Assembly (NCBI GenBank): GCA_002269645.1
Contig: NIVC01002933.1
Coordinates: 65,575 to 129,574 of the forward strand
Direction: 5' to 3'
From: Macrostomum lignano
Lineage: Eukaryota
Length of the DNA stretch: 64,000 nt
Shown here: positions 6,014 to 32,889 of the stretch, in pieces
Numbering within the stretch: position 1 is the stretch's first letter
Layout of the letters: the number at the start of each line of letters is the position of its first letter
The notes under the pieces: model-generated
What the model was told of the DNA's origin: nothing
The model's database searches: none
The model's input: only the letters and a program-made list of their open reading frames with translations
Position numbers and translations under genes: made by a program

Positions 6014-7844
6014 TTACAAGCTTGAACCAACTCGCAACTTCAGGCAGAAAACGTTGCCCCGAGCATCTCCGACAAGCAGATGCAGCTGAGCATCGAATGA
6101 CAGCAGCTTCATCGTAGTAACTTCGCAGCTGTGCTTGAAGTGCGACACCTGCAAAAATTGCAGGGTTCGAAATATTCTGATAATAAAAAACACAATGCGA
6201 TAAAAGCTCATGAGGGAGATTTTAAGCCGCACCTCAGCGAGCTGGTTCAGTGCAGCTCCGGCCTGCATGCGCCAGACGCTGACTTCCCCACCGAGGCCGT
6301 GGCGAGGAACGGCAGGACGCCGCTCAGATCGTCCGTCAGCCGGCAGAGGGCTGTGATTGGCTGCGCGTGGCACTGCGATGGTCGGTGAGAACGGTGCGAT
6401 GAGATATTTCTTCTGAGGTCAGATTTTCAAGACGTTGAAATTCTCTGCAGCTGTTCAAAAGGCTTACCAGAAATCTGCTGACCACTGGGCAGAGCTGCAT
6501 GCTGGAGTCCATTCTGAGCACCGAGATCCGCCCGGGTATCCCACAAGGGAATATCAGGCAGGCTTCTCCGGGCAAGTCGCCGGCAGCGAATACCTGCAGC
6601 AAGGCCGCAGCTCCGTCCAGCAAGTCGAGTCGGTCAGAAGCTCGCCAGCCTCCAACAATGGCAGGACCCGCCAACGCGGTGCGCAGCGTCGCCAAGTAAA
6701 GCCTGGGGTTGCCGAGCTGCAAGCAGAGCATGTAGTCCGGCTCCACGATCCGCAGAAGCACCGGCGGCCCAGCCGTCGCATCCAGGTCGCCGGCACCACT
6801 TTGGTGCCGAAGGGCGACGAAACTGCCCTGAGCTGCCACCAAAGCCAAAGTGGAATCTTCAAAGCCTACGACTGCCGCATGATTCTCAGGGATGGGGCAG
6901 AGGGCTGTCACGGGCGAGTGGCTGTCCAGCAGCTCTGCGACTCCAGCATTCAGCATGTCACGCAGAAGCGACTCATGGCCTTGAAGTAGGAGCTGCCCAC
7001 AGCGGATTCTGACCAGGCCTCTCCGCTGCTGCCAGCTGAGCAACAGAAGACTACCCGTCGGCGAGTTCAGATGGGTCACGGCGCCCCAAAGCGATGGCGC
7101 CAGCATTCGATGCTGCAGACACATGGAGTCCAGGTGCCACAGCAGCACGGACCCGTCCGCGCCGCCAGTGGCAACAAAAGAAATGTTTCCAAGACGGCAG
7201 ACTGCGGCGACTCGACTGCTGTGACCTCGGCTGAAGCCCAGCTCAGCGGGTGGCAAGTTTGAAGGATGCAGCAACTGCACTGGGCGGTCAGACGACTCGG
7301 GGTCGCGAACGGGCTGCAAGTTGAAGGCGAAAAAGCTAACACAGTGTACTTGCTAAGCTAACACACTGCACTTGCTAAGCTAACAAACTACACTTGCTAA
7401 GCTAACACAGTGTACTTGCTAAGCTAACACAATGTACTGGCTAAGCTACGAACACAGTGTACTTGCAAGTCTTACAACATGCACTTGTTCGGCTCCACCA
7501 CAAGGAAGACGAAAATGTTGCGTCGCAATCGACCCGCCGGTTGCAATAAAATTCGCTGAAGGCGCTGCTGGATCCTGGACAGGCTCCTGCGGCGAATCAG
7601 TCAGCCTTTCGTCAAACAAAATTCTGCTGCTGTCCGTGGCGGAGTCACGCGCTGGTCGGCTCCCAGAGTTGCCTGAGAATCCGTGAAGTTGAATAGTTTG
7701 CTACTTTTCAGAAAATTGAAGCCAGAAACACACATGACATAAATTTGTATTTAAAAATGTTTCACTTACCAATAGCTCGCTGCAGCCGTTGAGAAGAGGC
7801 AATTTGGCGCTGAGGTGCGATCGAAGCGCCACGAGGTCTCTCGG
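6014..7844 (-). pseudogene. WD40-repeat gene A (5'-truncated, fused to TRAF copy 2, frameshifted)
   Basis: Exons about 7844-7770, 7700-7476, 7335-6468, 6372-6230 and a last exon ending at 6014. WD-type motifs GHSSRVAAV...VATGGADGSVLLW and CHAQPITAL...LATAS...VSVW; C-terminus LLVGDARGNVFCLKL. Exon structure is paralogous to gene B. Frameshift near 6290 relative to B. Confidence 0.75.
7333..7465. repeat. 22-bp intronic tandem repeat (same unit as 3351-3504)
   Basis: GCTAAGCTAACACAGTGTACTT units inside a WD40-A intron. Confidence 0.85.
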
Positions 7845-8502
7845 GACACTCCGACAGGTGAGCAACATATCCCCGCCTGTCCATCGGTGTGCTCCGCTCC
7901 GAGCAGTGAGGACAGCGAGCTGAGAATCTCGGACAGCACACATCGGACTGCAGATTCCTGTGACTGGTCTCCATCTCGCTGTGTGTGACCAGCTGAGAGC
8001 ACAGGTCGCAGGTCTCCTTCCTGTGGCGACACTCGCTGCTGGTGTGTCGCTGCATGTCCTTCTTCAGGATGAGCTCTTTGCACTGCTCACAGCGGAGTGA
8101 GTGCCAGTCGCAGCTATGTTGCACATGCTGGTCCATGCGAGCCCATTCGAGTTGGACAGAGCAGCCGGCGTCGCAGTTCGGACAGCGGACTCGCAGCTTG
8201 GCGACCTCGCGTCTCGTCGCCATGTCGGGAAAGCAGGTAGCCCGGCTCACCTCGACCTCGACCTCGCCGCTAGCGTCCTCCTCCGAGTGGTGATCTCTGA
8301 GTGTGCAGGCCTCGGTGTGTCCGGGACAGGGCCGCTTCTCCACCTCGTGCAGCAGGCCGGTGACGCAGGCCTGGCACAGGCGGCACCCGTGCAGAGTCTG
8401 TTGGGCGTTGAAGAGCGGCTTTGAGCAGCTGCTGCACTGCAGGTGAGCCGGCAGATCGGAGACCGGCCGTGCGGCCGTCACACTCGAAGGCAGCTCGGAC
8501 AT
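7845..8502 (-). pseudogene. TRAF-like copy 2, truncated after ...SECPERP and joined to a WD40-A exon
   Basis: ATG at 8502 (MSELP). Similarity to the other copies stops at GAGAGACC (about 7845), after which an unrelated exon ending in a GTAAGT donor follows. Confidence 0.85.
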
Positions 8503-10440: not shown

Positions 10441-10789
10441 ACGTTTTTGCATACAGCTGGTAAATAGGTATGAAAGGCTCATTGTGTATTATTGAAATAT
10501 CACTAAAGAGTAATGTGAAAGATATTAGAAAAATAACGTTACTATCTTTTATGCTTCTACACTTCTGTAAACAGAACTTAAAAATTCATAGGTAATAGCT
10601 ACTTGTTTAGGTATTCTCAATCCCAGCTAAATATTCATGAATATCCGAGTGTTAAAGGGATAAAACTATGAAATTGACAATAGAAAAATTCTAACAAAAG
10701 CAGAATTTGTCATCTGTTGCCTGATAATTCTTTGCCTTCATTTTTTGTCTTTAATTTTGCCCAGACAAGAATTCAGTACTAGAATTCAT

Positions 10790-11290: not shown

Positions 11291-11833
11291 ATTCACTACG
11301 TTTTACCTTCAAGCCGTTTATAAAAATTGCCTGAGCTATTTATAGAAATTACAATGAGATGCTCAATCTCAAAAAAAACTATCAGAAGCTGAGTGAGTAC
11401 ATGGCCAACAAATGCATCGCACTGCTCACGCTACTCAGTGTACATCAGCAACGTAAAAGAAGCGAAATTGATCAAAGTTCTTCCTGAAACATGAAACCTT
11501 CTACTTAAAACTAAAGCTTTCTTCTACACTAACGGTGAGTAGTCAGTGATGTGTGAGTAAATTGAAAAATGAAAAACGAAAATTGAGTAATAGTAATAAA
11601 ACGAGAACCGTAACTCATAAAGCCTATAAACAGAATCACAGAAGCCTTTAACAAGGAAGCAACGCACGCGATATGAACAACCTTATTCAGAGGAAGAGCT
11701 GCAGTACAGTAGACAGTACTGAAGAGTTTAGGTAGAACCCTGTGGCATTAGCAGTAACCCTAGTAAAGTGAAGGCAACATATTTAAGACTGACAATTGAA
11801 AACGTTTGAAAACAGTTCACTGCTTCAACCGCC

Positions 11834-13054
11834 ATGTCCGAGCTGCCTTCGAGTGTCGTGGCTGCCCGGCCGGTCTCCGATCTGCCGGCTCACCTGCAGT
11901 GCAGCAGCTGCTCCAAGCCGCTCTTCAACGCCCGACAGACTCCGCACGGGTGCCGCCTGTGCCAGGCCTGCGTCACCGGCCTGCTGCACGAGGTGGAGAA
12001 GCGGCCCTGTCCCGGACACACCGAGGCCTGTACACTCAGAGACCACCACTCGGAGGAGGACGCTAGCGGCCAGGTCGAGGTCGAGGTGAGCCAGGCTACC
12101 TGCTTTCCCGACATGGCGACGAGACGCGAGGTCGCCAAGCTGCGAGTCCGCTGTCCGAACTGCGACGCCGGCTGCTCTGTCCAACTCGAATGGGCTCGCA
12201 TGGACCAGCATGTGCAACAGAGCTGCGACTGGCACTCACTCCGCTGTGAGCAGTGCAAAGAGCTCATCCTGAAGAAGGACATGCAGCGACACACCAGCAG
12301 CGAGTGTCGCCACAGGAAGGAGACCTGTGACCTGTGCTCTCAGCTGGTCACACACAGCGAAATGGAGACCAGTCACAGGAATCTGCAGTCCGATGTGTGC
12401 TGTCCGAGATTCTCAGCTCGCTGTCCTCACTGCTCGGAGCGGAGCACGCCGATGGACAGGCGGGGATATGTTGCTCACCTGTCGGAGTGTCCCGAGAGAC
12501 CGGTAGAGTGCAAGTACTCTCACCTGGGCTGCAGGGCGATGGTGCGCAGGTCCGATCTGGAGAGGCACTACAGAGAAAGCATGGACTCTCACCTTGAGCT
12601 CATGGACTCGAAACTGAAGCAGGCAGCGATAGCTCAGCAGAGTCCTGGTGAGATTTGCTTTCCAAATCAGTAAATTGGTTAACCAGAAAAAGCTGCTACG
12701 AGCGTATTTTCGGATATTAAAAAAAAATTTATACTTTTAGTATCTGCGGTCCCGCAGTCTTCTGTCGGTGCCGGAGCTCTTGCCGCCACAGCCACCGATG
12801 GACGCGATGTGGTCGACGTGAAGCGGCGAGTCGGCAGCGTCTTCGAGCAGTTCAAGAAGCTGCAGGTCAACGTGGCGAACTGGGCTCACAGCACCATGGA
12901 GCTCGAGCAGCTGGCTGACAGGTTCGGAGGCGTCTCGCAGCTGCGGACTCTGCTGAGCGGACTGGACGAGCGGACGAGGAGCGTCGAGCAGCTGCAGCAG
13001 CAGGTGCAGGAGCTCCAGCAGCAGGTGCAGCAGCTGCAGCGACATCGAGCCTGA
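11834..13054 (+). CDS. TRAF-like copy 3, intact: RING + TRAF zinc fingers + coiled coil, no MATH domain
   Basis: Exon 11834-12647 (donor GTGAG, phase 1) and exon 12741-13054 (TTTTAG acceptor) join in frame. CSSC...HGCRLCQAC...CP RING, CPNC...H...C and CEQC...H...C fingers, QQQVQQL heptads, ends HRA-stop. Confidence 0.9.
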
Positions 13055-13686
13055 TGAATAAAACTAATACGCTCGTATTTTACTGTGTATGACTCAGTTC
13101 CTTGTTCAGTCCCTGGATTCACTTCCTAGAACCGCTGCAATGTGGAATGACGAAGTATATCCCATTGCTAAATTGTTCACTAGAAAATTCATGCTTTATG
13201 CTTCATATATGATTTTCATATCCAGAATCAGTTCGTACGCTCAAATGACGACCAAAGGAGAGCTGCCAGTCTTTGCGCAAAGTTCGGCTGTTTTGGCTGA
13301 CTAAATTAATTTTTTGTTCGGAACACATCCGGAGGTCAGTCCAATTGCTAGTAGAACAAATACACGAACACGGAACTAAATGACTAGCACGGACCCATCA
13401 GCGTGTGAGCGAGGCTATATTTAGAAAATGGACTGGACCTCTTTGTGAGACCAAATTGTCGATCGTGCAACTATTTAATAGGACATGCCACACACACAAA
13501 CACAAGTAAAAAAGATCAAACGGTCCAATGGGGGCCACCAACACTCAAAACTACACAGACGAAATAGGAAAAGGAACGATTATTGTCTGTTTTTATTCAT
13601 AAATCTGGAAACTGTGAACTTGGCTGGGTGGAATGCTCCGTAGTGCCTGTCAGGAAAATTTGTAGAGGACCAGGTAACTGATTAAA

Positions 13687-14990: not shown

Positions 14991-15704
14991 CTTAATAAAA
15001 TGAATTGAAATGAGGCTTGCACCGCAAAAGTGCCGAACACATCACTGCGTTCTCTTTAAGCAGTCTTTCATAGCACGTTTGTGTATAATTATAATGTTTT
15101 GTATATTTTGTATTTTGTAATACGAGCTATTTTGTATTTTGTCCAAGCCCATCCCACTCCTTGGTTCGGTAGCTCCCCCTCTCTCTGTTAACTTTTTGTA
15201 AGCGAGCTGCGCTTCCAGACTTTGCCTAAGCCAGGTTTTGAATTAACCATGTTTTGCTGGGCGTCTGCAAATTTGCGTTTCTGCTGTGGTGGAACGGCTG
15301 TTCGTGTTATCCGAAACGTCAACAGACTTTTTAACCGAGTCCTGCTCAGCACAGCTCAACTCATTCCTCGTCAACTTTCCTCTACGCTTGTACCGACCTG
15401 CCTGTGGTTTGTGTCGCTTGCAACGCTTGGCTGGGATTCTCTCCGTTGCATTGCGTATTTTTCGGGATCTGCTTCAGCCTGCAGTCTTGCTATAAAAAAA
15501 GCTGCTTTCAATTCAAAAAGTTCGGCAAGCGGAACTTCCCATTCTGCTCGACACGCGGCTTCTACAGTTTGGAATGGGGAAGTCAACAGATCGGCGTTGG
15601 GATCAGAATGCCTGCTGAGTTAAAAAAAGCAGCTGCAGTTGCGAAATCATATCTGATTTACGACAGGATGACGGTTTAGCTTGATGTCAAAATACTCCTT
15701 GCAT

Positions 15705-17217
15705 AGCAGAGAGACAGCAGAGAGACGGCAGAGAGACAGCAGAGAGACAGCAGAGAGAAAGCAGAGAGACGGCAGAGAGACAGCAGAGAGACAGCAGAGA
15801 GACAGCAGAGAGACAACAGAGAGACATCAGAGAGACAGCAGAGAGACAGCAGAGAGACAGCAGAGAGACAGCAGAGAGACAGCAGAGAGACAGCAGAGAG
15901 ACAACAGAGAGACAACAGAGAGACAGCAGACACAGCAGAGAGAGAGCAGAGAGACAGCAGACACAGCAGAGAGAGAGCAGAGAGACAGCAGACACAGCAG
16001 AGAGACAGCAGAGTGACAGCAGAGAGACAGCAGAGAGACAGCAGAGAGACAGCAGAGAGACAACAGAGAGAGAGAGCAGAGAGAAAGCAGACACAGCAGA
16101 GAGACAGCAGAGTGACAGCAGAGAGACAGCAGAGAGACAGCAGTGAGACAGCAGAGAGACAACAGAGAGACAGCAGAGAGACAGCAGAGAGACACCAGAG
16201 AGACAGCAGAGAGACAGCAGAGAGACAGCAGAGAGAAACCAGAGAGACAGCAGAGAGACAGCAGAGAGACAACAAAGAGACAGCAGAGAGACAACAGAGA
16301 GAAACCAGAGAGACAGCAGAGAGACAGCAGACACAGCAGAGAGAGAGCAGAGAGACAGCAGAGAGACAACAAAGAGACAACAGAGAGACAGCAGAGAGAC
16401 AGCAGAGAGACACCAGAGAGACAGCAGAGAGACAGCAGAGAGACAGCAGAGAGAAACCAGAGAGACAGCAGAGAGACAGCAGAGAGACAACAAAGAGACA
16501 GCAGAGAGACAACAGAGAGAAACCAGAGAGACAGCAGAGAGACAGCAGACACAGCAGAGAGAGAGCAGAGAGACAGCAGAGAGACAACAAAGAGACAACA
16601 GAGAGACAGCAGAGAGACAGCAGAGAGACACCAGAGAGACAGCAGAGAGACAACAGAGAGACAGCAGAGAGACAGCAGACACAGCAGAGAGACAGCAGAG
16701 TGACAGCAGAGAGACAGCAGAGAGACAGCAGAGAGACAGCAGAGAGACAACAGAGAGAGAGAGCAGAGAGAAAGCAGACACAGCAGAGAGAGAGCAGAGA
16801 GACAGCAGACACAGCAGAGAGACAGCAGAGAGACAGTAGAGAGACAGCAGAGAGACACCAGAGAGACAGCAGAGAGACAGCAGAGAGACAGCACAGAGAC
16901 ACCAGAGACAGCAGAGAGACAGCAGAGAGACAGCAGAGAGACAGTAGAGAGACAGCAGAGAGACACCAGAGAGACAGCAGAGAGACAGCAGAGAGACAGC
17001 ACAGAGACACCAGAGAGACACCAGAGAGACAGCAGAGAGACAGTAGAGAGACAGCAGAGAGACAGCACAGAGACACCAGAGAGACAGCAGAGAGACAGCA
17101 GAGAGACAGCAGAGAGACAACAGAGAGACAGCAGAGAGACAGCAGAGAGACAGCAGAGAGACAGCAGAGAGACAGCAGAGTGACAGCAGAGAGACAGCAG
17201 AGTGACAGCAGAGAGAC
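15705..17217. repeat. Purine-rich about 11-bp minisatellite (GACAGCAGAGA variants)
   Basis: Read directly. It produces the spurious SLLSLCCL and RQQRDSRE ORFs. Confidence 0.95.
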
Positions 17218-17423
17218 GGTGGATCCGCCTATCGAAAAGCCGCCGCCACGCAGCTCAAGCGCAGACGTGGAAGACAGCCAATGAGAAATTGCCAAGCCAT
17301 AAAGATAAACTGCTCACTGTCTCCACGCAACGGAAGATGAACAGCGGAAGAGGAAATTTCCACTGCCTCGCCTAAATGAGCGGCAGCCTGAGATTTGCCG
17401 AGGAATTTCTTCGAGCTCTGAAA

Positions 17424-18956: not shown

Positions 18957-19426
18957 GGTGAGAAGGAATCTTCGCATCCTGCCCAAGATGCGTTATCGGG
19001 CCGTCCTACGCCCCTGACGAAGTTAATAAGAGCAGTTTAAAAGCTGTTTTAATCGAACCTTGGATTGCTGATTGCCGAAATAGTGCTTTTTTCAAGCAGC
19101 TTTTTGAAGAAATAAAATCTTCGGTGCAAATTAGATTTGAGAAGCTCGGTTTTGTTTTTATTATTTTCTGCCTTTTCTTTCTCAAGGTCTTCCCACTGCA
19201 TACTTCAGTTCTCGTTACTTTTCCTCTACTGAGCGACTTGCTTCCAGCTTTCAGAATTCAAAGCTGGGTGGCCGAGCGACTCCCGCTCCAAGGATCAAGG
19301 ATTCGGCCGCGCATTCATTCATGTACTTTCGATTTAGATAGCCTGTTGTAAATCTCTATGCAGACAAAGAGGTGTCCCGGTTTATTTTTGGAGTTCCAAT
19401 GGGAGTCCCAAAGCCCCTGAATTGTA

Positions 19427-19769
19427 AGAGGCAGAGGGAAGGCAGAGAGAAGGCAGAGGGAAGGCAGAGTGAAGGCAGAGTGAAAGCAGAGTGAAAGCAG
19501 AGGGAAGGCGGAGGGAAGGCAGAGTGGAGGCAGAGGGAAGGCAGAGTGAAGGCAGATGGAAGGCAGAGGGATGGCAGAGGGATGGCAGAGGGAAGGCAGA
19601 GGGAAGTCAGAGTGAAAGCAGAGGGAGGCAGAGGGAAGGCAGAGTGAAAGCAGAGGGAAGGCAGAGGGAAGGCAGAGGGAAGGCACAGGGAAGTCAGAGG
19701 GAAGGCAGAGGGAAGTCAGAGGGAAGGCAGAGTGAAAGCAGAGGGAGGCAGAGGGAAGGCAGAGGGAAG
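19427..19769. repeat. 11-bp purine minisatellite GAAGGCAGAGG
   Basis: Read directly. Confidence 0.92.
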
Positions 19770-20245
19770 GCGGATTCGCCTATCGGCAGGTTTAGGTATT
19801 GATACACCTCGCATTGACAGGGGGCCTAAGGGATTGTGACAAAAATAATGGCGCCCCCTCACAGTAATTTCAGCGCCCCTTCACAACAGGCCCCTGATAT
19901 GCATGCGAGTTCCAGAAGGGCGCTTTCCCAAAACAGAAATTCGATATACGAGCGTACGACAATATTTTATCCAGCATTACGAAACAAAACTAGAAAAATT
20001 CGTTAATTGGAAGCTGTTTATTTTGCCGGAGCGTCATTTCGCCGGCAAGAGCGGAGCGGTTTGTACAGAGTACATGAGTAAACCATATACATATACTAAT
20101 AGATCATTCGGTAGTCAGGTTATATGCACGAGGCCAAGGCCAAGCCTAAAAAGGTGATGGGTAAAAAGCCGCATCACCCCACAAGGACCAGTCTCGTAAA
20201 ATCGAAAAAAACGGAAAATCCTTGAAAATAAATTTCCATAAAGCA

Positions 20246-22718
20246 TCAAAATGCAGTCTGATGAAATGCGTTCGCAGCAAGCCAAGGAAGCTCCAGAGAG
20301 AAGGCGTTCCCGCCAGCATCCCCGACAAGCAGCAGAGGCCGGTCGGTGGCTGTGAGGTGCAGCCCCAGGGTGGTCACCTCGTGGCCGTGCTCGAAGTGAG
20401 CAACCTGAGTGGCAGGGGCGGGTTAGAAATTGGCGAGAAGTTTGATTAGAAGCGAAACGAAAAATGACTGCACGATGCCTGACCTCAGCCAGCTGATTGA
20501 CCCCGCTCTGCATGCGCCAAACGCTGACTTTCCCTTGAGCAGAGGCCGTGGCCAGGAGCGGCAGGGCGCCCGTGAGGTCGCTCGTCAGCAGGCTGATGGC
20601 TCGTATCGGCCGGGTGTGGCACTGCGGAAAGGGAGACAAATCGCAGGGAGATCGGGGTGAGTTCGGTGTGAGATCAGGGTGAAACCGGGGTGAGATCGGG
20701 GTGAGATCGAGGTGAGATCGGTGTGAGATCGGGATGAAATCGGGGTGAGATCGGGGTGAGATCGTGATGAGATCGGGGTGAGATCGGGGTGAGATCGGGG
20801 TGAGATCGGGGTGAGATCGGGATGAGATCGGGGTGAGATCGGGGTGAGTTCGGTGTGAGATCAGGGTGAAACCGGGGTGAGATCGGGGTGAGATCGAGGT
20901 GAGATCAGTGTGAGATCGGGATGAAATCGGGGTGAGATCGTGATGAAATCGGGATGAGATCGGGGTGAGATCGGGGTGAGATCGGGGTGAGATCGGGGTG
21001 AGATCGGGGTGAGATCGGGGTGAGATCGGGGTGAGATCAGGGTGAGATCGGTGTGAGATCGGGGTGAGATCAAGGTGAAACCGGGGTGAGATCGGGGTGA
21101 GATCGGGGTGAGATCGGGGTGAGATCGGGATGAGATCGGGGTGAGACCGGGGTGAGATCGGGGTGAGATCGGGGTGAGATCGGGGTGAGACCGGGGTGAG
21201 ATCGGGGTGAGACCGGGGTGAGATCGGGGTGAGATCGGGTGAAACCGGGGTGAGATCGGGGTGAAACCGGGGTGAGATCGGGGTGAGATCGAGGTGAGAT
21301 CGGTGTGAGATCGGGATGAAATCGGGGTGAGATCGGGGTGAGATCGTGATGAGATCGGGGTGAGATCGGGGTGAGATCGGTGTGAGATAGGATGAGATCG
21401 AGGTGAGATCGTGGTGAGATCGGGGTGAGATCTGGGTGAGATCGGGGTGAGATCTTGTGGAGGTTCTGGGTGAATTTGGTGAGAAATGGAAAACATCCTC
21501 AGTTTCAGAATTGAACTTCAGCCTGCAGCAACTTGAAACAATAATTTTAGGTTAGAAATTCAGACATCAGATATTAAAAAGAAACGATTCACCATAAAAC
21601 CCGTCAAGACGGGATGAATTTTGGCATCGGAGCCGAGTTTAACGATGGAGATCCGATTGCGACTTTGACACCGAAACGCCACAATGGCAACTCCGGGACC
21701 GCAGCCTGCAGCGCACGCCTGAATCACTGGAGAAGCATCCGCCGCCATCTCGTCGAAGCACTGGAAGGTTCGCCAGCCGCTGACAGCCATCCTGCCGTCC
21801 TGAGCCGTGTGCAGCTGAGCGGAGCGGAGCACAGGGCTACTGAGCTGGCGGGCCAGCAGCCACCCGGGCTCCAGAATCCGCAAAAACATCGGCGGGCCAG
21901 CCAGAGGGTCGAAACCGGTGAGCCCAACCAGCGGCTGAAGACCTCCTTCGGCTGGCACCAGTGCGAGGCTTCTATCGGTGAGAGCGACAATGGCCTGAGC
22001 AGATTCGGGAACTGCGCACATGACCGCCACAGGTGAGTTGCTTTGAAGCAGCTCCGCCTCTCCAGTGCTCAAAAGGTGCTCCAGCTCAGCATCAGTGTCG
22101 CACAGATACCCCTCCGGGCACCGGAGTCGCACGAGTCCATTCAGATTCTCCCAGCCGGCCAACAGAATGTCAGATGCCGGAGACACCAGACAGATGATTG
22201 GACCCCAACTCGCAGGGGCCCGGACTCGACTCTGGAGACGCATTGAGTCGAGGTGCCACAGCACCGCGATTCCGTCCGCGCCTCCCGAAACAAAAATCTG
22301 ATGCCCGTCTAGAGAGCAGGCAGACGTGACTCGGCCAGCATGACCCCGACTGAAAACCAGCTCGGACAGCAGCTGATTAGGCCCGCTCAGTATTCGGACA
22401 GGCGAGTCGGCAGCAATGGGGTTGCAAATTGGCTAAAAATGTGGAATGAGTTTAGTGACAGGACTTTCGACTAAGTGAATAAAGGTGCGAATGAATATAC
22501 GCAAAGTCGCTCACATTCTGCAACTGCAGAGCTCCACCCAACGAATACGGCCTGTGAAGGAACGATGAAGAGCTCATCGGCGATTCTAGCGGATCTTGGC
22601 CGGGGTCTCGGGGCACCGAGGTCAGTTGTGCGTCGTGTCGGCTTCGGTCGCCAACAGGAACGTCCATGGCCTGCCGTCGGCCACTGAAAACAGCTGACCA
22701 GTGATGAAGAGCAAACTG
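20246..22718 (-). CDS. WD40-repeat module B, four open phase-0 exons, no start exon other than TRAF copy 4
   Basis: Exons 22718-22515, 22432-21593, 20621-20484 and 20404-20246 all have AG/GT ends and join without stops. Motifs GHAGRVTSA...FVSGGADGIAVLW, CHTRPIRAI...LATASAQGKVSVW and LLVGDAGGNAFSL. Confidence 0.82.
20648..21455. repeat. 11-bp intronic minisatellite GAGATCGGGGT
   Basis: Read directly. It lies in the intron between WD40-B exons 2 and 3. Confidence 0.95.
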
Positions 22719-22793
22719 CTAGCATGCTGAGTAGCAGTACATAAAATTTGTCTCAATAATAGAATCCATTGACCCTACACCATACTGACATAC

Positions 22794-23604
22794 CAGAATT
22801 CGAATGAGCTATCGCTGCTTTGAGTTTCGAGTCCATGAGCTCAAGGTGAGAGTCCATGCTTTCCCTGTAGTGCCTCTCCAGATCGGACCTGCGCACCATC
22901 GCCCTGCAGCCCAGGTGAGAGTACTTGCACTCTACCGGTCTCTCGGGACACTCCGACAGGTGAGCAACATATCCCCGCCTGTCCATCGGTGTGCTCCGCT
23001 CCGAGCAGTGAGGACAGCGAGCTGAGAATCTCGGACAGCACACATCGGACTGCAGATTCCTGTGACTGGTCTCCATCTCGCTGTGTGTGACCAGCTGAGA
23101 GCACAGGTCGCAGGTCTCCTTCCTGTGGCGACACTCGCTGCTGGTGTGTCGCTGCATGTCCTTCTTCAGGATGAGCTCTTTGCACTGCTCACAGCGGAGT
23201 GAGTGCCAGTCGCAGCTCTGTTGCACATGCTGGTCCATGCGAGCCCATTCGAGTTGGACAGAGCAGCCGGCGTCGCAGTTCGGACAGCGGACTCGCAGCT
23301 TGGCGACCTCGCGTCTCGTCGCCATGTCGGGAAAGCAGGTAGCCCAGCTCACCTCGACCTCGCCGCCGCCGCCGCCGTCCTCCTCCGAGTGGTGGTCTCT
23401 GAGTGTGCAGGCCTCGGTGTGTCCGGGACAGGGCCGCTTCTCCACCTCGTGCAGCAGGCCGGTGACGCAGGCCTGGCACAGGCGGCACCCATGCGGAGTC
23501 TGTCGGGCGTTGAAGAGCGGCTTGGAGCAGCTGCTGCACTGCAGGTGAGCCGACAGATCGGAGACCGGCCGGGCGGCCGACACAGTCGAGGGCAGCTCGG
23601 ACAT
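22794..23604 (-). CDS. TRAF-like copy 4 first exon (RING + zinc fingers), directly upstream of WD40 module B
   Basis: ATG at 23604. Open to the phase-1 donor CTG|GTATGT at 22794/22793. No coiled-coil exon follows. Confidence 0.88.
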
Positions 23605-24509
23605 GGCGGTTGAAGCAGTGAACTGCAAGTTCTTTCTGTTCCTTGCTAAGCCTTATATAGGCATTTTCTAGTTTAGAGGGTCAATTGCTTTACAAGGTTC
23701 TACCTGAGCTCTACAATACTCCCTACGGATTTCAACTGCACTGCAGTTTACTTCTGAATAGGCTTTTTTATAGCGCGTAGTTGCTTCCTTGTTAAAGGCG
23801 GCTCATGCTGCTTCTATTTTTAGGCGTTATGATTTAAGGTACTGGTTTATTACTCAATTTTGCCAGTATGTCTGTTTGGTTTCTTCTCGTGAAGTTTTCT
23901 GAAAGTTCAGACTTTTTATTTATGAATAATTTTATCTATTAAAAATAAAAAAAACTTTATGCTTAGGGGTAGTACATTTTCGAAACCAAATTACTTCTCC
24001 TTAGCCAAATGATATTGCGACGTCACTCCTATGAGCAGACACAAAACACCGCATCGGTGTATTGCTATCATACTCGTATGGCTATAGAAAATCAAGTTTT
24101 TTGACTGTCTATAGCATCAGTTTCTACCAACGTAATAATAATTCCTCCCCAGTCTCACAGTCTCCATGAAGCTGCAGTAAAGAGCATGGTAGCCTTTGTT
24201 CTAGATCGCTAAGTACGAGTATACAGTATTTAGGAGCGCGCCGGATCCATATACTAAAAATTCAATCTAAAATGCATTCTGCTTGGTGCACTGCCTACAA
24301 AACAACCTGGATCGAGCCGTGTGCTATTTTTATCACGGCGTGTGATCTATTTTTGGAAACATCAAACACAACTCTAATAAATAATAAATAACATAATAAA
24401 ACATACATAATAAATAGAACATAATAAATAAACTGCAATGATTTTGTCTGATTGTCAAAAGCGTCGCAGCAGTTTTTGGGAGACGGCTACTCGTTGCCTC
24501 CTCTTCTGG

Positions 24510-24810
24510 CTGTCATCCAGATGATGCAGCACCCACCAATCGCTCAGTGACCCTCTGTAGACCCAGGTTCTCTGTAAGAATGCTGTATGATGCTGTATGA
24601 AGGAATTCCGCTGAGTTCTGCCATTTCGATTTCCAGTAGACCACAGATGAGCTCGATTTTGCTCTTGGTCCCCACTTTCCGGGGCCTCCCAGATCTCGGC
24701 TCGTCCAGGGTCGAAGTGCAGCCGCTCTTGAAGCGGTCGTACCGCTTGTACTCAGCTCACTGGCACGCTGCATTCTTGCCGGTGGACTTGCACAGCCGAA
24801 GTTTCTTGCA
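24510..24810 (-). mobile_element. Degenerate mariner/Tc1 transposase N-terminal relic
   Basis: Minus-strand frames give YDRFKSGCTSTLDEPRSGRPRKV and, after a shift, ILTENLGLQRVTERLV. These resemble the mariner motifs RFKxG..sl.D.PRSGRP and IL.e.LG...v..rWVP. Confidence 0.65.
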
Positions 24811-25151
24811 ACCATTCACTTTTTATTTGACACCGTCTTGGCTTCAGCTTCTTGCTTGGCTTCCTACAGATCCATTTATTCAAACAGCAGTTTGATCTTG
24901 AATAATGGAAATACGAGCGTATATTTTAGACGATTTTACATTTTTGTCTACTTCCCACTGGTCCTCCCCACCTCCGCGCCATCCTCCGCCGCACGCCATG
25001 TGGTTTTTAACCTCTCTTCTTTTCAGCCTTGGCCTTGGTGCTGCGTTCCATTGTTTGGAATTTTATCTGAATGTTTACAACTTATTGAAAAATTTTCCTT
25101 TAGAAACTGGAGTCGGCTCGGGTGCCTGAACTTGAAGGCAGAGAATTTGAC

Positions 25152-25604
25152 GAGCTACAGAGGGGGCGCCAGCTACAGAGGGGGCGCCAGCTACAGAGGG
25201 GGCGCCAGCTACAGAGGGGGCGCCAGCTACAGAGGGGGCGCCAGCTACAGAGGGGGCGCCAGCTACAGAGGGGGCGCCAGCTACAGAGGGGGCGCCAGCT
25301 ACAGAGGGGGCGCCAGCTACAGAGGGGGCGCCAGCTACAGAGGGGGCGCCAGCTACAGAGGGGGCGCCAGCTACAGAGGGGGCGCCAGCTACAGAGGGGG
25401 CGCCAGCTACAGAGGGGGCGCCAGCTACAGAGGAGGGCGCCAGCTACAGAGGGGGCGCCAGCTACAGAGGGGGCGCCAGCTACAGAGGGGGCGCCAGCTA
25501 CAGAGGGGGCGCCAGCTACAGAGGGGGCGCCAGCTACAGAGTGGGCGCCAGCTACAGAGGGGGCGCCAGCTACAGAGGGGGCGCCAGCTACAGAGGGGGC
25601 GCCA
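25152..25604. repeat. 18-bp tandem repeat CCAGCTACAGAGGGGGCG
   Basis: About 25 near-perfect units. Confidence 0.95.
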
Positions 25605-27149
25605 GTTCATAAGGGTGTCTCCGCAGACTGAGATGTCGCTGACCTGTTGTCAGCACTGCTGAGAGTGAGAGCTGCTGCACCTGCCTAGGGACGTACGACT
25701 CTGATGATAGTAGTATTCATATCATTTTAGCGGTGTTTGCTATTTGGTCAAAATAGTCATTGACCATTTTGATGACTAATGCTTGTACATATGTTTGCCC
25801 AAAATGACATATGTTCTATTTTTAGACAATTCACAAAAGCAAAGTACGAGCGTAATATAATAATTCACATAGTTTTCTTTTCATTTCTTTCACGTGGTCT
25901 TTTTTCTCTCTGCACCCATTATTTAAGCCAAGTGTTGCTCTTACGTTTGACATTGAAAAACTCGCTTGCTGTTTAAAAGAATCCTGCGGCTGTTTGGGTT
26001 GGCAGAAGATCGACTCTTTTAAATTTCAACATTCATAGTTTTATAATCAATCGTAGTTTAGAAACAAAGCAGTTTGTGATTAAAGTCACAATAATCTTAA
26101 TCAGGTAACTGACTAGAATTAGGCTATAAATTTTATCTATCAATTGCTCGCGAGTCTCATGTACGACGTACTCGCTTCATTTTTGAGTAAAGAAATACAC
26201 TGCAGTTTGGGAAGTTCCTTCAGTGAAACGGTGAAACTTGATTTCTTTGCCTAAATGAGCTTGGTTGGCTTTTTAATTTTTTCGATGCCAATAGTTTTAT
26301 TATTCAATGTCTTTATTTTATATACTTTTTTATCTTTTATGCCGCGAAACTGCGGACTTTTGTGTCTTGGATTTAACTAGGTTAATTGGAACAGAAACGA
26401 CACTTTGTTAAAGTATTTAGAATTTTTATTAAGCAATTTATAATAGTTGTTGTCAGCTGCCAGAACAGCAGAGGTCACAGCAGCCTTTCGGCCCTTTCGG
26501 CTCTCTTTTAGGCTTCTAAAATCCTGACTCACTGACAGGTATCAACTTTGTTGCCATATCAATAGGAAATCATCTTCACCTGCCTCCAGGAGAAGTTCAT
26601 AAAGATTTTGCAGTAGCTCTTGAGGATCTCCGCTTCTTCTTAGTCGATTTATTGTGCCATCTTGCGATACCCGACGGTTGAGCAGCTGCGTCCAGCTTCT
26701 CAGCATAAGCCTTCATCTCACAGTTTTAATTAGTTGTAGCTAGCCCCGATTTTGCAACTTCGAAACTGTTAGATAGAGATTATTAAATTCCCACAAGACG
26801 CTGCAATATTTCGTATTCAGCACAAAAACGATAGTGTGACAAATTTTTAACTCCTTAAAAATCAATTACGTTTTTTGTTGGATGAAGTCTGGTGAAAACG
26901 GCAAAAATTTTATGAATATTTGATATAATGGCATGACACTAGTAACAGGCCAAGTTTACCTACACGAATTTCTAAAAAAAATTGTGCCAAAACGAGTCAT
27001 GAGCAAGCTTTCGTGTTTCATGGACTCGGCACGCAGCTAAAAAGGAGCATTGCAGCGTTTGATGACAAAAAACAGAGCCACACCCTTTCACAAAAACGCC
27101 TAAAGTTTTTAAAAGAAGACTTCTCACTTTTCAGCAGAACACATGCGTC

Positions 27150-28395
27150 ATGTCAGAACTTCCACAGCGAGTGTCGGGAGCCCGGCCGGTCTCCGATCTG
27201 CCGGCTCACCTGCAGTGCAGCAGCTGCTCCAAGCCGCTCTTCAACGCCCGACAGACTCCGCACGGGTGCCGCCTGTGCCAGGCCTGCGTCACCGGCCTGC
27301 TGCACGAGGTGGAGAAGCGGCCCTGTCCCGGACACACCGAGGCCTGCACACTCAGAGACCACCACTCGGAGGAGGACGTCGGCGGCGGCGGCGAGGTCGA
27401 GGTCGAGGTGAGCCGGGCTACCTGCTTTCCCGACATGGCGACGAGACGCGAGGTCGCCAAGCTGCGAGTCCGCTGTCCGAACTGCGACGCCGGCTGCTCT
27501 GTCCAACTCGAATGGGCTCGCATGGACCAGCATGTGCAACAGAGCTGCGACTGGCACTCACTCCGCTGTGAGCAGTGCAAAGAGCTCATCCTGAAGAAGG
27601 ACATGCAGCGACACACCAGCAGCGAGTGTCGCCACAGGAAGGAGACCTGCGACCTGTGCTCTCAGCTGGTCACACACAGCGAGATGGAGACCAGTCACAG
27701 GAATCTGCAGTCCGATGTGTGCTGTCCGAGATTCTCAGCTCGCTGTCCTCACTGCTCGGAGCGGAGCACACCGATGGACAGGCGGGGATATGTTGCTCAC
27801 CTGTCGGAGTGTCCCGAGAGACCGGTAGAGTGCAAGTACTCTCACCTGGGCTGCAGGGCGATGGTGCGCAGGTCCGATCTGGAGAGGCACTACAGGGAAA
27901 GCATGGACTCTCACCTTGAGCTCATGGACTCAAAACTCAAGCAGGCAGCTGCTGTTCCGTCGAATTCTGGTAAGCTTTTCTGTTGATTAATAGCAAAGAT
28001 CAATGTGCGCCAATACATTAAGGTGGTTGGATGCGAATGTTTTGTAGGCCGCTATTGCAATAATGTTTAATTGTTCATTTCCAGCAGCTGCGGTCCCGCA
28101 GTCCTCCGCCGGTGCCGCACCTCCCGCCCCCACAGCTGCCGACGGTCGCGAGGTGGCCGACGTGAAGCGGCGAGTCGGCAGCGTCTTCGAGCAGTTCAAG
28201 AAGCTGCAGGTCAACGTGGCGAACTGGGCTCACAGCACCATGGAGCTCGAGCAGATGGCTGACAGGTTCGGAGGCGTCTCGCAGCTGCGGACTCTGCTGA
28301 GCGGCATGGACGAGCGGACGAGGAGCGTCGAGCAGCTCCAGCAGCAGGTGCAGCAGCTCCAGCAGCAGGTGCAGCAGCTGCAACAGCGGGCTTGA
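27150..28395 (+). CDS. TRAF-like copy 5, intact RING/ZnF + coiled coil
   Basis: Exons 27150-27969 (G|GTAAG) and 28085-28395 (TTTCCAG|CA) join in frame; ends QRA-stop. Confidence 0.9.
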
Positions 28396-28747
28396 TGGTT
28401 AAAATGCTTTAATCAGGAAAAATTATGCATTCAACTGCTTTAATTGTAATCGGCCAGCATAGATGTGATGTTTATAATGTAAATCTGCCTTTCGCGATTA
28501 TTATTCAGAAGGAAATGTGATTTTTTCCAGCAAATTGGGTCAATATCAATATTGGGTCGGATTTCAAGTTTTGATTGTTGAATAACCTGTTTAAAATTTT
28601 AAGCAGTTTTAAAACGCTTTCCTAACTTCGTTGACAGAACATTTTTGTGCAATTGGTATCAACTATTAAACAAATTTTGTGCCCGACTCTAAAGTCCGTG
28701 CTGACCGCTGCAGTATATTCTGACTTTTTACTAACCTTCCAGTCGGC

Positions 28748-29112
28748 CTGCACTGAGGTCTCTCCAGTGTGCACTGCCCACCTACATTGTAAGTCGGCAC
28801 TGAGGTCTCTCCAGTGTGCACTGCCCACCTACATTGTAAGTCGGCACTGAGGTCTCTCCAGTGTGCACTGCCCACCTACATTGTAAGTCGGCACTGAGGT
28901 CTCCAGTGTGCACTGCCCACCTACATTGTAAGTCGGCACTGAGGTCTCCAGTGTGCACTGCCCACCTACATTGTAAGTCGGCACTGAGGTCTCCAGTGTG
29001 CACTGCCCACCTACATTGTAAGTCGGCACTGAGGTCTCCAGTGTGCACTGCCCACCTACATTGTAAGTCGGCACTGAGGTCTCCAGTGTGCACTGCCCAC
29101 CTACAGTGTAAG
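28748..29112. repeat. 45-47-bp tandem repeat CTGAGGTCTCCAGTGTGCACTGCCCACCTACATTGTAAGTCGGCA
   Basis: About 8 contiguous units with no unique spacers. Confidence 0.93.
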
Positions 29113-29139
29113 TCTGTCTGAAGTCTCTTCACTGCATTC

Positions 29140-29360
29140 CAAGTGCAGTCACGTTAATTTGAGACTAAATTGGAATATCGGCTTGGCTCTGCTCGTTAAA
29201 TTAAGGTCCTTGATGGCCAACCCCCAAGGCACAGTGAAGTGTACATGCCTAACAATAAATAAAGTGAGACTCCTGTGCGAGTGTGTGTCTGTGCGAATGA
29301 CTGCCTGCTCAGGGGTCGGCGGAATGGGCAGTAATGCCTCTCTCACCGGCTGTGTCTGTT
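29140..29360 (+). mobile_element. SINE-like family copy (partial)
   Basis: CAAGTGCAGTCAC...CCTTGATGGCCAACCCCCAAGGCACAGTGAAGT matches 14670-14900. Confidence 0.6.
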
Positions 29361-29756
29361 TAAAAAATGGCTCATTTCTCTATGTCCAGTTAATTAGCAA
29401 TGTGCGTCCCCCACCCGTTTGGGAGGCAAAAAAGAAAGAAATATAAATATGTGAATAAACTGCAAGTAGGTTTTGACCTTGTACAATTAACATTTGCTAT
29501 TATTATTTTCTAAAGGAAAATTATGTTTTAAGCAAAAAGCATACGCTCTGAAATCCAGCTATCTTAGGCTTCTGAGCATGAACCTTGACATCTCAGCAAC
29601 TCTCCCGATGAGCCACAAAATTTTAATAGTACCTCCATGAGCATTGAGATCTCAGCAATTTCCCACTTGAACATTGATATTTCAGCAGTTCTCACTGACC
29701 CACAGAATTTCAGAGATTTCCCCATGAAGCCTTGACGTCTTGTAGCAATTCCCCCC

Positions 29757-30540
29757 ACGAGCCTTGACATCCTAGCATCCCCCCACAAGCCTTGACATCC
29801 TAGCATCCCCCCACGAGCCTTGACATCCTAGCATCCCCCCACGAGCCTTGACATCCTAGCATCCCCCCACGAGCCTTGACATCCTAGCATCCCCCCACGA
29901 GTCTTGACATCCTAGCATCCCCCACGAGTCTTGACATCTTAGCATCCCCCCACGAGCCTTGACGTATTGTAGCAATTCCCCCCCCCACGAGCCTTGACAT
30001 CGTAGCATCCCCCACGAGTTTTGACATCCTAGCATCCCCCCACGAGCCTTGACATCTTAGCATCCCCCCACGAGCCTTGACGTATTGTAGCAATTCCCCT
30101 CCACGAGCCTTGACATCGTAGCATCCCCCCACGAGTCTTGACATTCTAGCATCCCCCCACGAGTCTTGACATTCTAGCATCCCCCACGAGTCTTGACATC
30201 TTAGCATCCCCCCCACGAGCCTTGACATCTTAGCATCCCCCCACGAACCTTGACATCTTAGCATCTCGCCATGAGCCTTGACATCTTAGCATCTCGCCAT
30301 GAGCCTTGACATCTTAGCATCTCGCCACGAGCCTTGACATCTTAGCATCCCCCCACGAACCTTGACATCTTAGCATCTCGCCATGAGCCTTGACATCTTA
30401 GCATCTCGCCATGAGCCTTGACATCTTAGCATCTCGCCATGAGCCTTGACATCTTAGCATCTCGCCATGAGCCTTGACATCTTTGCACCCACCCATGAGC
30501 CTTGACATCTTTGCACCCACCCATGAGCCTTGACATCTTA
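29757..30540. repeat. About 28-bp minisatellite GAGCCTTGACATCTTAGCATCCCCCCAC
   Basis: Read directly, with graded variants along the array. Confidence 0.92.
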
Positions 30541-31539
30541 GAACCCTAAACCTAGCCCAAACCCTGCCGAGAGTGATAGAATTTCAGCAACAGCCGCCAG
30601 GAAATGGAGATCGGAAAATTTCTGATCGAACGGGGCAAGTTTTATGAAATTTTGTTGAGCCGTTTTTCTCTGAAATCAATCACATACCTACCTATATACC
30701 CAGATAGATAGAGAAAACTCATTTTAGTATACCGGTTATGTTAAGGCTAATCACATTTATATGTAGACTTTAAACCTTTTTTATCATCCATTAAAAGTGT
30801 GGCCCAGTGAATGTTTACGCTCGTATTGCATTATCTTCTGCTTAAGTAGTCCTTGCTATTAATACTATTTTATTTTATGATTACTCATTACTGTTCCCCA
30901 CTCTCATCTTAAAAAAGCGATTTGTCGGCCAGCTACTCAGACGAGCCGCTCATTCTAAATTTTTATTTAGAATGAGCAGCTTCATGCCTTCAGGCCTCGC
31001 CTGAAATGAGGCCTTCAGGCCTCGCCCAGAACTGAAAAAAACACAGCTCACTTGTCCTGTTTATCTGGCACACGAAGCTTCACTCGTGGCGGGGTTCTGA
31101 GATTCTAAAAATAGAACTTGCGTTTCCAGACAGGCAATTTGACTGAAATGAATTGAATGTACACTGCATGTGTGGGACTGACAAGTACATGTATACTGGG
31201 TACGTGTTGGAGTGTACATTTGGAACAGGACGTATCTTATTTCCCTACCCACACGTACAATATAAGCTAGACTTATAATAAGCAAGATATTTGTGATGTT
31301 CAAATTAATGGAATTTTCCACAACTAGCAGACATTTCCGTCACGTGAATTTTAGTCATAAAAAGCATGATTGCTCTTTATTAATTCTGTCAGTATAGAAA
31401 AGAGCTGAAAAAAGCCGAGACTGGCTCGCATTGTTCACTAACAAGTGAACCTAAAGTAAATGCGACATCAGCCAAGTGAATTCCTGCGACAGCTTATCAC
31501 AAAAGCAGGGTTTTATCCAGCGGCACCTCCAACTCATTG

Positions 31540-32295
31540 ATGGTCAGAAGCTTCCAGAACACCCAGCAGTCCTGGTGGGTCCCAGTCGGTCGCATCTCCA
31601 GCCAGGCTGAGGCCCTGTCCCAGGCTCAGCTGTTTGAGGCCCGTCATCCGGGACTAAAGTACACTGGCAGCTGGAACTCCGCCCCGAACTCAAAGCTCTG
31701 CTCCATCGAGGTCGCCTCCGCGGGGTCAATTATTGTCTCTCTGGGCGCCACCTCCAGCCGCAGAGATGCGCAAGACAAGGCTGAAGCCTTCATCGCAAAG
31801 CATCCCTACCTGAAGTGGACAGCCAGCTGCTCAGAGCTCGGCTGGCTCCAGAACTTCCAGATTGTGGTCGAAGCTTTCCTGCCCACCGAGTGGCACATGA
31901 AGGAAGGCACAGTTGGGATCTGCCTACCAGTGACCACCAGCCTGCGGCTGAGGAACCTGACCTCCGAGAAGGTGACCAGGATTACTGCAAGGGGCTTGGA
32001 GCCCAGCGACTGGGGCCAGCGGCGGCCCTGCCTCCAGTTCTCCGACGGGCATATCGCCGAGCGAGGCGTCCTGGAGAAGGAGCTGGACGTGAACTTCTGG
32101 AGCCACACGGCCAAGCTGGCGGTCTGGCTCGGCTTCCAGAGCGGCCGCTACCTGCAGTTCCAGGTGAACAGCCGGCTGGCCATCGACAGCTCGGCGAAAA
32201 ATCATTGGAAATTCTCCTCTGGAGCTGGCCTGTCGGTTTACCACAAGGTGGAACCCGGAGCCCGCCTGCTAGAGGTGGTCGTGTGCGACTCATGA
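31540..32295 (+). CDS. Single-ORF protein, two candidate MVL-like (mannan-binding lectin) repeats + unknown beta-rich domain; paralog of 37244-38011
   Basis: Open ORF with GC3-rich codons, collinear with 37244-38011. Repeats WWVPVGRISSQAEALSQAQLFEARHPGLKYTGSW and IIVSLGATSSRRDAQDKAEAFIAKHPYLKWTAS. The lectin call is motif recall only. Confidence 0.7.
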   Translation: MVRSFQNTQQSWWVPVGRISSQAEALSQAQLFEARHPGLKYTGSWNSAPNSKLCSIEVASAGSIIVSLGATSSRRDAQDKAEAFIAKHPYLKWTASCSELGWLQNFQIVVEAFLPTEWHMKEGTVGICLPVTTSLRLRNLTSEKVTRITARGLEPSDWGQRRPCLQFSDGHIAERGVLEKELDVNFWSHTAKLAVWLGFQSGRYLQFQVNSRLAIDSSAKNHWKFSSGAGLSVYHKVEPGARLLEVVVCDS

Positions 32296-32889
32296 CGCCG
32301 CACCGCTCAAAGACGCGCGGCACTTCTTGTACAAATGTTAAATAGGAGCGTAAATTGCCTGACAACTGACTTATTATAGTGTACGATTGATTTTATAATT
32401 TGTAAACAACGCTAAGCATACAATCAAAATACTTGACATTGTATTGTACTGTACAGAACAAAAATAGAAACGAAAATACACCTGAGAGCCATGTTTTTGC
32501 CACGGTCGCAGCTCTCTACCGCACGGATTTTCCATGGAAAAAACTTTGGTTATTGTACAGTTCCAACAAATCATGTGACAGAAATGTCTATTTTAAGCAG
32601 CCGCCAGCCAGAGCAGCCAGGCCAGGCGGACTGCGACCTGAAGTTGGCTGCCGAGCTCGAACTCAACTCAAGCAGGAAGCAAGTGCGTGGCTTCTCTGTT
32701 ATAATCATACTTCAGTATTTGCTGAAAGGGATAAAAAATTAAGCTCAGCATCGCCCACTGCACCTGCGCTCCCATCGCCCACCCTGCCAGCCCCGGGTCT
32801 CCAGGTTGAAAGCAGCCCCAACAGAAAGTACATCTGCGGGAAATTTCATGAATAATCGCTGGAGGGTTTGGGCTACACTCGCAAATCAC

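Follow-up and report, generated by a model that had tools for sequence, protein, structure and literature searches.

Does the first exon of a TRAF-type gene in the flatworm Macrostomum lignano continue by cis-splicing into a set of WD40-like exons that lies just downstream, and if it does, what kind of protein results? The question is raised by positions 20,246 to 23,604 (minus strand) of a 64,000-nucleotide stretch of contig NIVC01002933.1 (positions 65,575 to 129,574 of the forward strand, assembly GCA_002269645.1), hereafter the window, which carries a cluster of TRAF genes. An initial annotation had read this gene, here called copy B, as a new TRAF7-like chimera made of a RING/TRAF zinc-finger exon and an intact WD40 module. 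Our analysis suggests that copy B is probably a member of a small family, specific to M. lignano, in which a TRAF6-like exon 1 is cis-spliced onto a WD40-like gene. At the level of the family the fusion is real, with RNA support in near-identical paralogues; for copy B, comparison with these paralogues makes it plausible.

Structure of copy B

The five segments of copy B join to 2127 nt, that is 708 codons followed by TGA, with no internal stop and with GT…AG introns at every boundary. In this the claim that the WD40-like exons join without stop or shift holds. The features of the gene are as follows.

22794..23604, minus strand: exon 1, 811 nt, with the ATG at 23604 and a phase-1 end; RING-like motif and TRAF-type zinc fingers, residues 1-270
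22694..22793, minus strand: intron 1, 100 nt, GTATGT...GGTCAG, with copy-specific additional AGs and a TAG
22515..22693, minus strand: exon 2, 179 nt, phase 1 to phase 0; Ser/Pro/Asp-rich linker
22667-22665, minus strand: in-frame ATG inside exon 2, in the context GCCATGG
22433..22514, minus strand: intron 2, 82 nt, GTGAGC...TTTTAG
21593..22432, minus strand: exon 3, 840 nt; first ~5 blade-like units of the WD40-like domain, including its single canonical WD repeat
20622..21592, minus strand: intron 3, 971 nt, phase 0
20484..20621, minus strand: exon 4, 138 nt; a WD-like blade, containing …ATASAQGKVSVWRM…
20405..20483, minus strand: intron 4, 79 nt, GTCAGG...ACTCAG
20246..20404, minus strand: exon 5, 159 nt including the TGA at 20248-20246; final blade-like unit and C-terminus
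20017..20022, minus strand: candidate poly(A) signal AATAAA, ~225 nt below the stop and the sole AATAAA or ATTAAA within 400 nt after it

Intron 3 is almost filled by an 11-nt minisatellite, GATCTCACCCC, at 20648-21454 (73.5 copies, 86% matches, Tandem Repeats Finder).

As had been noted, the WD40-like frame opens at 22718, 76 nt after the TRAF exon ends, and the coiled-coil exon that usually follows is missing: tblastn finds none after copy B or after the TRAF copy that begins at 8502. A phase-1 donor ends each of the nine TRAF exon-1 copies of the window. Among the six canonical TRAF copies, intron 1 has lengths of 80, 93, 94, 115, 115 and 229 nt, and the 100 nt of copy B do fall within the 80-115 nt described for most copies. 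Two routes from the TRAF exon into the WD40-like frame are open, as proposed: 23604-22794 joined to 22693 gives 708 aa, and 23604-22786 joined to 22718 gives 719 aa. The first (donor at 22794, acceptor GGTCAG/CT, the slash marking the splice site) has its junction in the GenBank protein PAA78657.1 and in three UniProt models of paralogues. The second needs an AG that copy B alone has and the paralogues lack; it is unsupported.

Paralogous units and deposited models

The window is collinear, in reverse orientation, with contig NIVC01000672.1 (GCA_002269645.1) at 93-97% identity; judged from this alignment, it is the homeologous or allelic counterpart of that region and distinct from that sequence. 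The locus analysed on this contig (L001) contains two TRAF-WD40 units: U1 (10193-13393), the positional counterpart of copy B, and U2 (24374-27400), a tandem duplicate. Their exons measure 811/814, 179, 840, 138 and 159 nt, their frames are intact at 708/709 aa, and their donor (G/GTATGTCAG) and acceptor (GGTCAG/CTGTTTTCAG) are identical to those of copy B. Apart from substitutions, the exons of the three units differ by a single whole codon, in exon 1, with no other indels; introns 1-3 vary in length (intron 3 has 820 and 643 nt in the paralogues) and intron 4 has 79 nt in all three. The protein encoded by exon 3 is 90-93% identical between copy B and the paralogues, and the ratio of nonsynonymous to synonymous divergence (dN/dS) among these young paralogues is 0.3-0.4 in the TRAF exon. 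The dN/dS values of the exons and the pattern of indels among copies B, U1 and U2 indicate weak purifying selection in which frameshifts are avoided.

Protein matches to the WD40-like part are confined to M. lignano. A profile search of 1.84 billion representative proteins returned the 149-aa UniProt model A0A1I8G688, which starts in the tail of the TRAF exon, covers exon 2 and reaches exon 3, and the 90% cluster of this model includes PAA78657.1. The latter is an RNA-seq-derived GenBank entry of 684 aa, 'hypothetical protein BOX15_Mlig012340g1, partial', in which the TRAF exon is followed by …SHSNS/AVFSGRRQ…, …LQLQN/PICN…, the whole of exon 3 and a stop a few codons into intron 3. The junction of exons 1 and 2 is also present in A0A1I8G688, A0A1I8G7F6 and A0A1I8J792, which represent 89-93% identical paralogues. 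The joins between exons 3, 4 and 5 are covered by A0A1I8G7W2, A0A1I8GNQ9 and A0A1I8G632, and the exon 3 to exon 4 join itself (TDFM/CHTRPIR) is found in the first two of these. PAA78657.1, A0A1I8G688, A0A1I8G7F6, A0A1I8J792, A0A1I8G7W2 and A0A1I8G632 belong to the same family, with 83-93% identity and the same junctions; all are partial, come from the paralogous contig and are named only 'hypothetical', 'TRAF-type domain-containing' or 'WD repeats region'. The fusion is therefore already in GenBank as an unnamed, partial hypothetical protein and is not a new sequence. Mlig012340 is not mentioned in the publications returned by our literature search and is absent from the supplements of PMC5816591.

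The annotation of GCA_002269645.1 was derived from RNA-seq only (StringTie and TACO) plus a de novo transcriptome, with open reading frames (ORFs) called by TransDecoder (Wudarski 2017, PMC5730564). Its reads were multi-mapped to up to 1000 places per read, and its pipeline split transcripts at detected trans-splicing or poly(A) signals (PMC5730564). The pipeline placed no cut between the TRAF exon and exon 2. Because the annotation is RNA-based and the pipeline cuts at trans-splice peaks, the junction has been seen in RNA with no trans-splice cut inside it.

An older copy and the divergence of the two halves

A second TRAF-WD40 unit in the window, copy A, bears on the age of the arrangement.

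6014..8502, minus strand: copy A, older paralogous TRAF-WD40 unit, with exons 8502-7770, 7672-7476, 7313-6468, 6372-6233 and 6148-6014

Copy A has a phase-1 donor (GTAAGT), an intron 1 of 97 nt, a phase-1 exon 2 and then three WD40-like exons. Exon 2 of copy A and exon 2 of copy B are homologous from the acceptor onward (197 and 179 nt, both 2 mod 3), and in both the acceptor lies 12 nt upstream of a common GCCGAC. Where copy B has the Met encoded at 22667, copy A has an Arg; since its exon 2 contains no ATG, this exon cannot be a first coding exon. The TRAF exon of copy A departs from the others after ECPERP, so that its final finger is missing, and exon 4 carries a 4-nt deletion and a 6-nt insertion that shift the frame. 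From these lesions copy A is probably a pseudogene.

Synonymous divergence (dS) between copies A and B is 0.046 in exon 1 and exceeds 1 in the WD40-like part. From this difference we conclude that the TRAF-WD40 arrangement is old, and that, as the sequences indicate, the TRAF exon was recently homogenised or replaced by its neighbours. Exons 4-5 are the part best conserved between the two copies (59% amino-acid identity, dN 0.31, dS 0.76). TRAF exon 1 together with ~250 nt upstream is ~89% identical among copies A, B and the third TRAF copy of the window (22794-23861 against 7835-8729 and 11579-12649). The phase-compatible arrangement has been kept in four loci, comprising three intact copies (B, U1 and U2) and the decayed copy A.

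In copy A this similarity breaks off sharply at ECPERP, within the exon, in a manner that resembles the boundary of a gene-conversion tract. The 65-nt tail of copy A exon 1 may be homologous to the normal TRAF tail; the score of their local alignment was matched by 19-35 of 500 shuffles. A homology between the start of exon 2 and the start of the coiled-coil exon ('SAV') was rejected; the DNA does not align.

Is exon 1 spliced to exon 2?

Several observations weigh against the fusion. Transcript support comes from paralogues of copy B only, not from copy B, and no deposited model spans all five exons. In PAA78657.1 exon 1 is that of U1 (99.4% identity) and exons 2-3 are those of U2 (100%), with an implied 'intron' of ~14 kb; by this comparison the entry is partly a hybrid of paralogues as well as incomplete, which we read as cross-assembly or cross-mapping between them. 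The dN/dS of exons 2-5 among the young paralogues, 0.6-0.7, indicates weak constraint. A strong alternative acceptor, TTTTCAG/TGG at 22683, follows the in-frame acceptor at a distance of 10 nt, and its use with the standard donor would end the frame after ~20 codons. Moreover, AGs end at positions 9, 19, 42, 67, 75, 78 and 100 of intron 1 in copy B and only at 9, 42 and 88 in the paralogues; the copy B-only AGs at 67, 75 and 78, the first of them followed by TAG, raise doubt over the splicing of this copy.

The hybrid nature of PAA78657.1, with exons from units 14 kb apart, would be expected if the annotated fusion were an artefact, in which a chimeric transcript assembly or a gene-model merge combined abundant TRAF transcripts with an adjacent WD40 gene. 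The mapping of reads to up to 1000 places would favor such errors, and another model of the same cluster, UniProt A0A1I8GMY3, is plainly chimeric, consisting of two TRAF genes and an unrelated 250-aa ORF. However, the join coincides precisely with a canonical GT donor and a canonical AG acceptor, the frame is kept, and the same phase-compatible layout occurs in four loci, one of them with a dS >1. Furthermore, the flanking 54 residues, the last ones of exon 1, are identical in U1 and U2, and for this reason the junction of exons 1 and 2 is unambiguous even in the hybrid model. We consider an artefact very unlikely.

The changes in intron 1 could also mean that the family is real and copy B itself is decaying or mis-spliced, its altered intron leading to the use of out-of-frame AGs and to a truncated TRAF protein only. 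The last 40 nt of the intron differ from those of the paralogues and include the AGs added at 67, 75 and 78 and the TAG after the first; the donor, GTATGT, is off the GT[G/A]AG consensus, dN/dS is 0.6-0.7, and copy A demonstrates that decay happens in this family. However, the same GTATGT donor is found in the transcript-supported paralogues, and the 708 codons are intact, without any indel relative to them. To the eye, the 3' end of intron 1 in copy B resembles that of the old copy A, which suggests that it is probably ancestral rather than a new lesion. Decay of copy B is, on balance, unlikely. The first AG near the end of an intron is usually the one that is used, and this rule favors the in-frame acceptor in U1 and U2, where no other AG precedes it in the final 46 nt of intron 1.

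A third explanation dispenses with the join. The locus may be an operon, producing a TRAF protein of ~283 aa that ends in the retained intron and a WD40-only mRNA that receives the spliced leader at 22693 or 22683, its translation starting at the ATG at 22667 and yielding ~428 aa. The genome gives reason to consider this, as 30% of M. lignano genes are trans-spliced, 15% are in operons and the commonest intergenic distance is ~100 nt (PMC8629364). The acceptor at 22683, TTTTCAG/TGG, matches the trans-splice acceptor motif [T/C]TNCAG, and the ATG at 22667 is in frame, has GCCATGG as its context and recurs in the B-type paralogues. The trans-spliced leader itself ends in ATG (PMC8629364). Its sequence is …TTATTGCATG, and, read from the sequence, a start at the leader ATG is rejected because it is out of frame at 22693, at 22683 and at the acceptor of copy A. 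The homology between the coding frames of A and B begins at the acceptor, upstream of the ATG, and copy A lacks this ATG. Intron 1 contains no AATAAA or ATTAAA that could signal a 3' end in copy B, A, U1 or U2. Cis-splicing is the expected fate of an acceptor when a donor precedes it in cis (Conrad 1993, quoted in PMC8629364), and here a phase-1 donor lies 100 nt upstream and is used by the RNA-based model. The RNA-derived models cross the junction in cis, and a pipeline that cuts at trans-splice peaks left it uncut. We regard an operon as quite unlikely, although a WD40-only form could exist as a minor isoform.

Predicted protein

If exon 1 and exon 2 are cis-spliced as we propose, a TRAF6-like gene amplified in tandem would contribute its first exon, which would use its usual phase-1 donor, and the four exons of a fast-evolving WD40-like beta-propeller gene would take the place of the usual single coiled-coil exon. 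In the product of 708 aa, residues 1-270 would comprise a RING-like motif together with TRAF zinc fingers, four or five in number, and ~60 disordered residues would link them to a WD40-like domain of ~7 blades (residues ~340-708). The protein would have neither a coiled coil nor a MATH domain.

The zinc-finger part of this description stands on a match of residues 1-270 to the Pfam family zf-TRAF (PF02176, E = 1.3e-9, 39 bits against a cut-off of 27, in two stretches). Among solved structures its best relatives are the RING-zinc-finger chains of TRAF6 (5vo0, 8hz2 and 3hcs, E ~1e-10). The RING half of the initially annotated 'RING/TRAF zinc-finger exon' fares less well. Eight Cys/His positions of a RING-like motif are filled (C23, C26, H38, C40, C43, C46, C59 and H62), but the Pfam scan (E <= 1) returns no RING family, and residues 17-64 align weakly with the TRAF6 RING (12-13 bits, phmmer). 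The same scan finds no MATH family in the fusion protein. Residues 271-330, which correspond to the exon 2 region, are rich in Ser, Pro and Asp, and in the AlphaFold2 (AF2) model they have a predicted local distance difference test (pLDDT) score <35 and no helix.

Of the 'intact WD40 module' one canonical repeat holds up, and the rest is weakly shown. The repeat, at residues 355-398, scores 24 bits with Pfam WD40, below the cut-off of 27, and an hhalign comparison with the canonical WD repeat likewise recovers a single repeat (87% probability over 45 columns). It is the only clearly recognisable WD repeat, and this, together with the RING result and the quality of the structure model, speaks against the domain assignment. 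Weak matches to propeller families of Pfam cover residues 543-694; a TEP1-type match was not significant (E = 0.085) and was set aside. Counting by eye, we infer ~7 blade-like units in the C-terminal ~370 residues. Predicting the structure, as had been suggested, gave an all-beta AF2 model with ~26 strands from an alignment of four sequences, but its pLDDT of 43 is too poor for a count of blades. The top Foldseek matches are all WD40 propellers with TM-scores of 0.2-0.3, which, given the poor model, is weak support.

A profile search of the 1.84 billion representatives finds no relatives of the whole WD40-like part outside M. lignano. The matches from other species are multi-repeat WD40 proteins that hit only the canonical repeat, and against solved structures the profile likewise finds generic single-repeat WD40 matches only. 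Because the outside matches cover just this one repeat, the origin of the propeller cannot be traced.

By analogy with TRAF6 and TRAF7, the N-terminal half may recruit a ubiquitin-conjugating enzyme and the propeller may bind a partner or substrate. Without a coiled coil, any oligomerisation would depend on the RING.

Comparison with TRAF7, TRAF6 and the neighbouring genes

TRAF7 consists of a RING, a zinc finger, a coiled coil and 4-7 WD40 repeats that replace the MATH domain (PMC7179693). What the flatworm protein shares with it is the order of the domains, with a putative RING-type motif and TRAF-type finger(s) at the N-terminus and a predicted WD40-type propeller in the place of MATH at the C-terminus, as well as the likely logic of an E3 module combined with a propeller for partner binding. 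The differences are substantial, however. The flatworm protein has no coiled coil between fingers and propeller, and it has four to five zinc fingers of the TRAF6 type. Its propeller is highly divergent, with one repeat near the Pfam family, whereas the repeats of TRAF7 are canonical, and no relatives of this part were found outside M. lignano. Its TRAF exon is 92-97% identical to that of the adjacent TRAF-coiled-coil genes, that is, it matches the local cluster. What remains of the label 'TRAF7-like' is the domain order; there is no coiled coil, and the neighbouring genes carry an almost identical TRAF exon. Descent from the metazoan TRAF7 lineage is made less likely, indirectly, by the identity of the TRAF exon to the local paralogues, by TRAF6 as the best match among solved structures and by the confinement of the WD40-like part to M. 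lignano. In our comparison the resemblance is superficial, and we would not class the flatworm protein as a member of the TRAF7 family.

The similarity to TRAF6 covers the RING region and zinc fingers 1-3, with FPD…REV…L.V.C and the Cys/His spacing conserved, but the third and fourth metal-ligand positions read H-G-C in the flatworm protein and C-G-H in TRAF6, and the flatworm C-terminus is WD40-like in place of the coiled coil and MATH domain. A further comparison is with the neighbouring TRAF-coiled-coil genes (e.g., BOX15_Mlig029665g1, 378 aa). These have a near-identical exon 1, the same phase-1 donor and an intron 1 of similar length, and some copies have ~250 nt of upstream sequence in common with the fusion. 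The neighbouring genes consist of two exons, the second encoding a Gln-rich coiled coil, whereas the fusion has four WD40-like exons instead. The 378-aa proteins also lack a MATH domain.

Genomic surroundings

The four TRAF-WD40 units (A, B, U1 and U2) are always head to head with a canonical TRAF-coiled-coil gene, which identifies the repeated module as a divergent gene pair. With the family already deposited and organized in such pairs, the view of copy B as a single new chimera does not hold.

8502-6014, minus strand, with 11834-13045, plus strand: gene pair of copy A (window)
23604-20246, minus strand, with 27150-28395, plus strand: gene pair of copy B (window)
10193-13393, plus strand, with 7889-6653, minus strand: gene pair of U1 (L001)
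24374-27400, plus strand, with 21681-20468, minus strand: gene pair of U2 (L001)

The public contig contains one more tandem copy of the gene pair than can be matched in the window. In TRAF copy 1 (43-678, plus strand), which is cut by the start of the window, exon 1 is interrupted shortly before its end by a premature TGA (after …LELMDSRL), and a coiled-coil exon is not within reach; this copy, too, is probably decayed. The 603-aa model A0A1I8GMY3 (window 27150-38011, plus strand) joins its two TRAF genes and the 250-aa ORF at 37244-38011 via cryptic sites within exons. Gene models in the TRAF cluster are unreliable. The ORF at 37244-38011 (plus strand) has a paralogue at 31537-32295 (plus strand). 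Both are single-exon ORFs of ~250 aa, 43% identical over 237 aligned residues, and each follows a TRAF-coiled-coil gene; L001 has a third copy (2476-1769). The one of the pair that was scanned, at 37244-38011, has no Pfam match.

Long minisatellites that look like coding sequence are found at 15676-17295, 24838-25662, 19315-19800 and 47902-48294; they are open in several frames (SLLSLCCLSAV / RDSRETAERQQ, GGASYR and others). Such repeats inflate lists of ORFs and probably break transcript assemblies. Inside the TRAF cluster, an intronless 564-aa ORF (42749-44443, minus strand) belongs to the amiloride-sensitive sodium channel family (PF00858, E = 9e-30).

The end of the window differs in composition. 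The region 57000-64000 has a G+C content of 27-32%, compared to ~50% elsewhere, and contains a run of intronless ORFs, mostly on the plus strand; a 336-aa ORF with a piggyBac-type transposase domain (55575-56585, minus strand; DDE_Tnp_1_7, E = 4e-38) adjoins it. The 1047-aa ORF at 59080-62223 has, by eye, the motifs of a family-B DNA polymerase (DFEAT, NGSGYDF, LDANNLYG, KLMNNAFYGK and YADTDS). Pfam detects an Endonuclease VII domain in it (PF02945, E = 3e-7) and no polymerase. In appearance, the region is an unclassified mobile-element or virus-like insert that carries a protein-primed polymerase.

Implications

For the annotation of M. lignano, the outcome is a modest improvement, namely a full-length 708-aa model for a gene that is publicly held as partial, unnamed fragments. 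The gene models of the cluster, with their hybrid exon assignment and chimeric merges, need correction with long reads.

The fusion is an undescribed, lineage-specific domain swap and a variant of the TRAF design. Within a tandem gene cluster, it would provide a clean and datable example of a swap that made use of a phase-compatible intron, with gene conversion homogenising one half of the gene (dS 0.046) and the other half diverging (dS >1). More tentatively, and with somewhat less than even confidence, we suggest that a TRAF7-like design arose independently in the Macrostomum lineage, when the coiled-coil exon was exchanged for orphan propeller exons via the shared phase-1 intron. Under this scenario the fusion would be old, predating the split of copies A and B at dS >1, and gene conversion would keep the TRAF exon matched to its neighbours while the propeller diverges fast. 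If independent of TRAF7, the family would be a case of convergence on the TRAF7 design. The combination of conversion with a fast-diverging propeller would be in keeping with a recognition domain under rapid evolution, such as one that acts in innate immunity.

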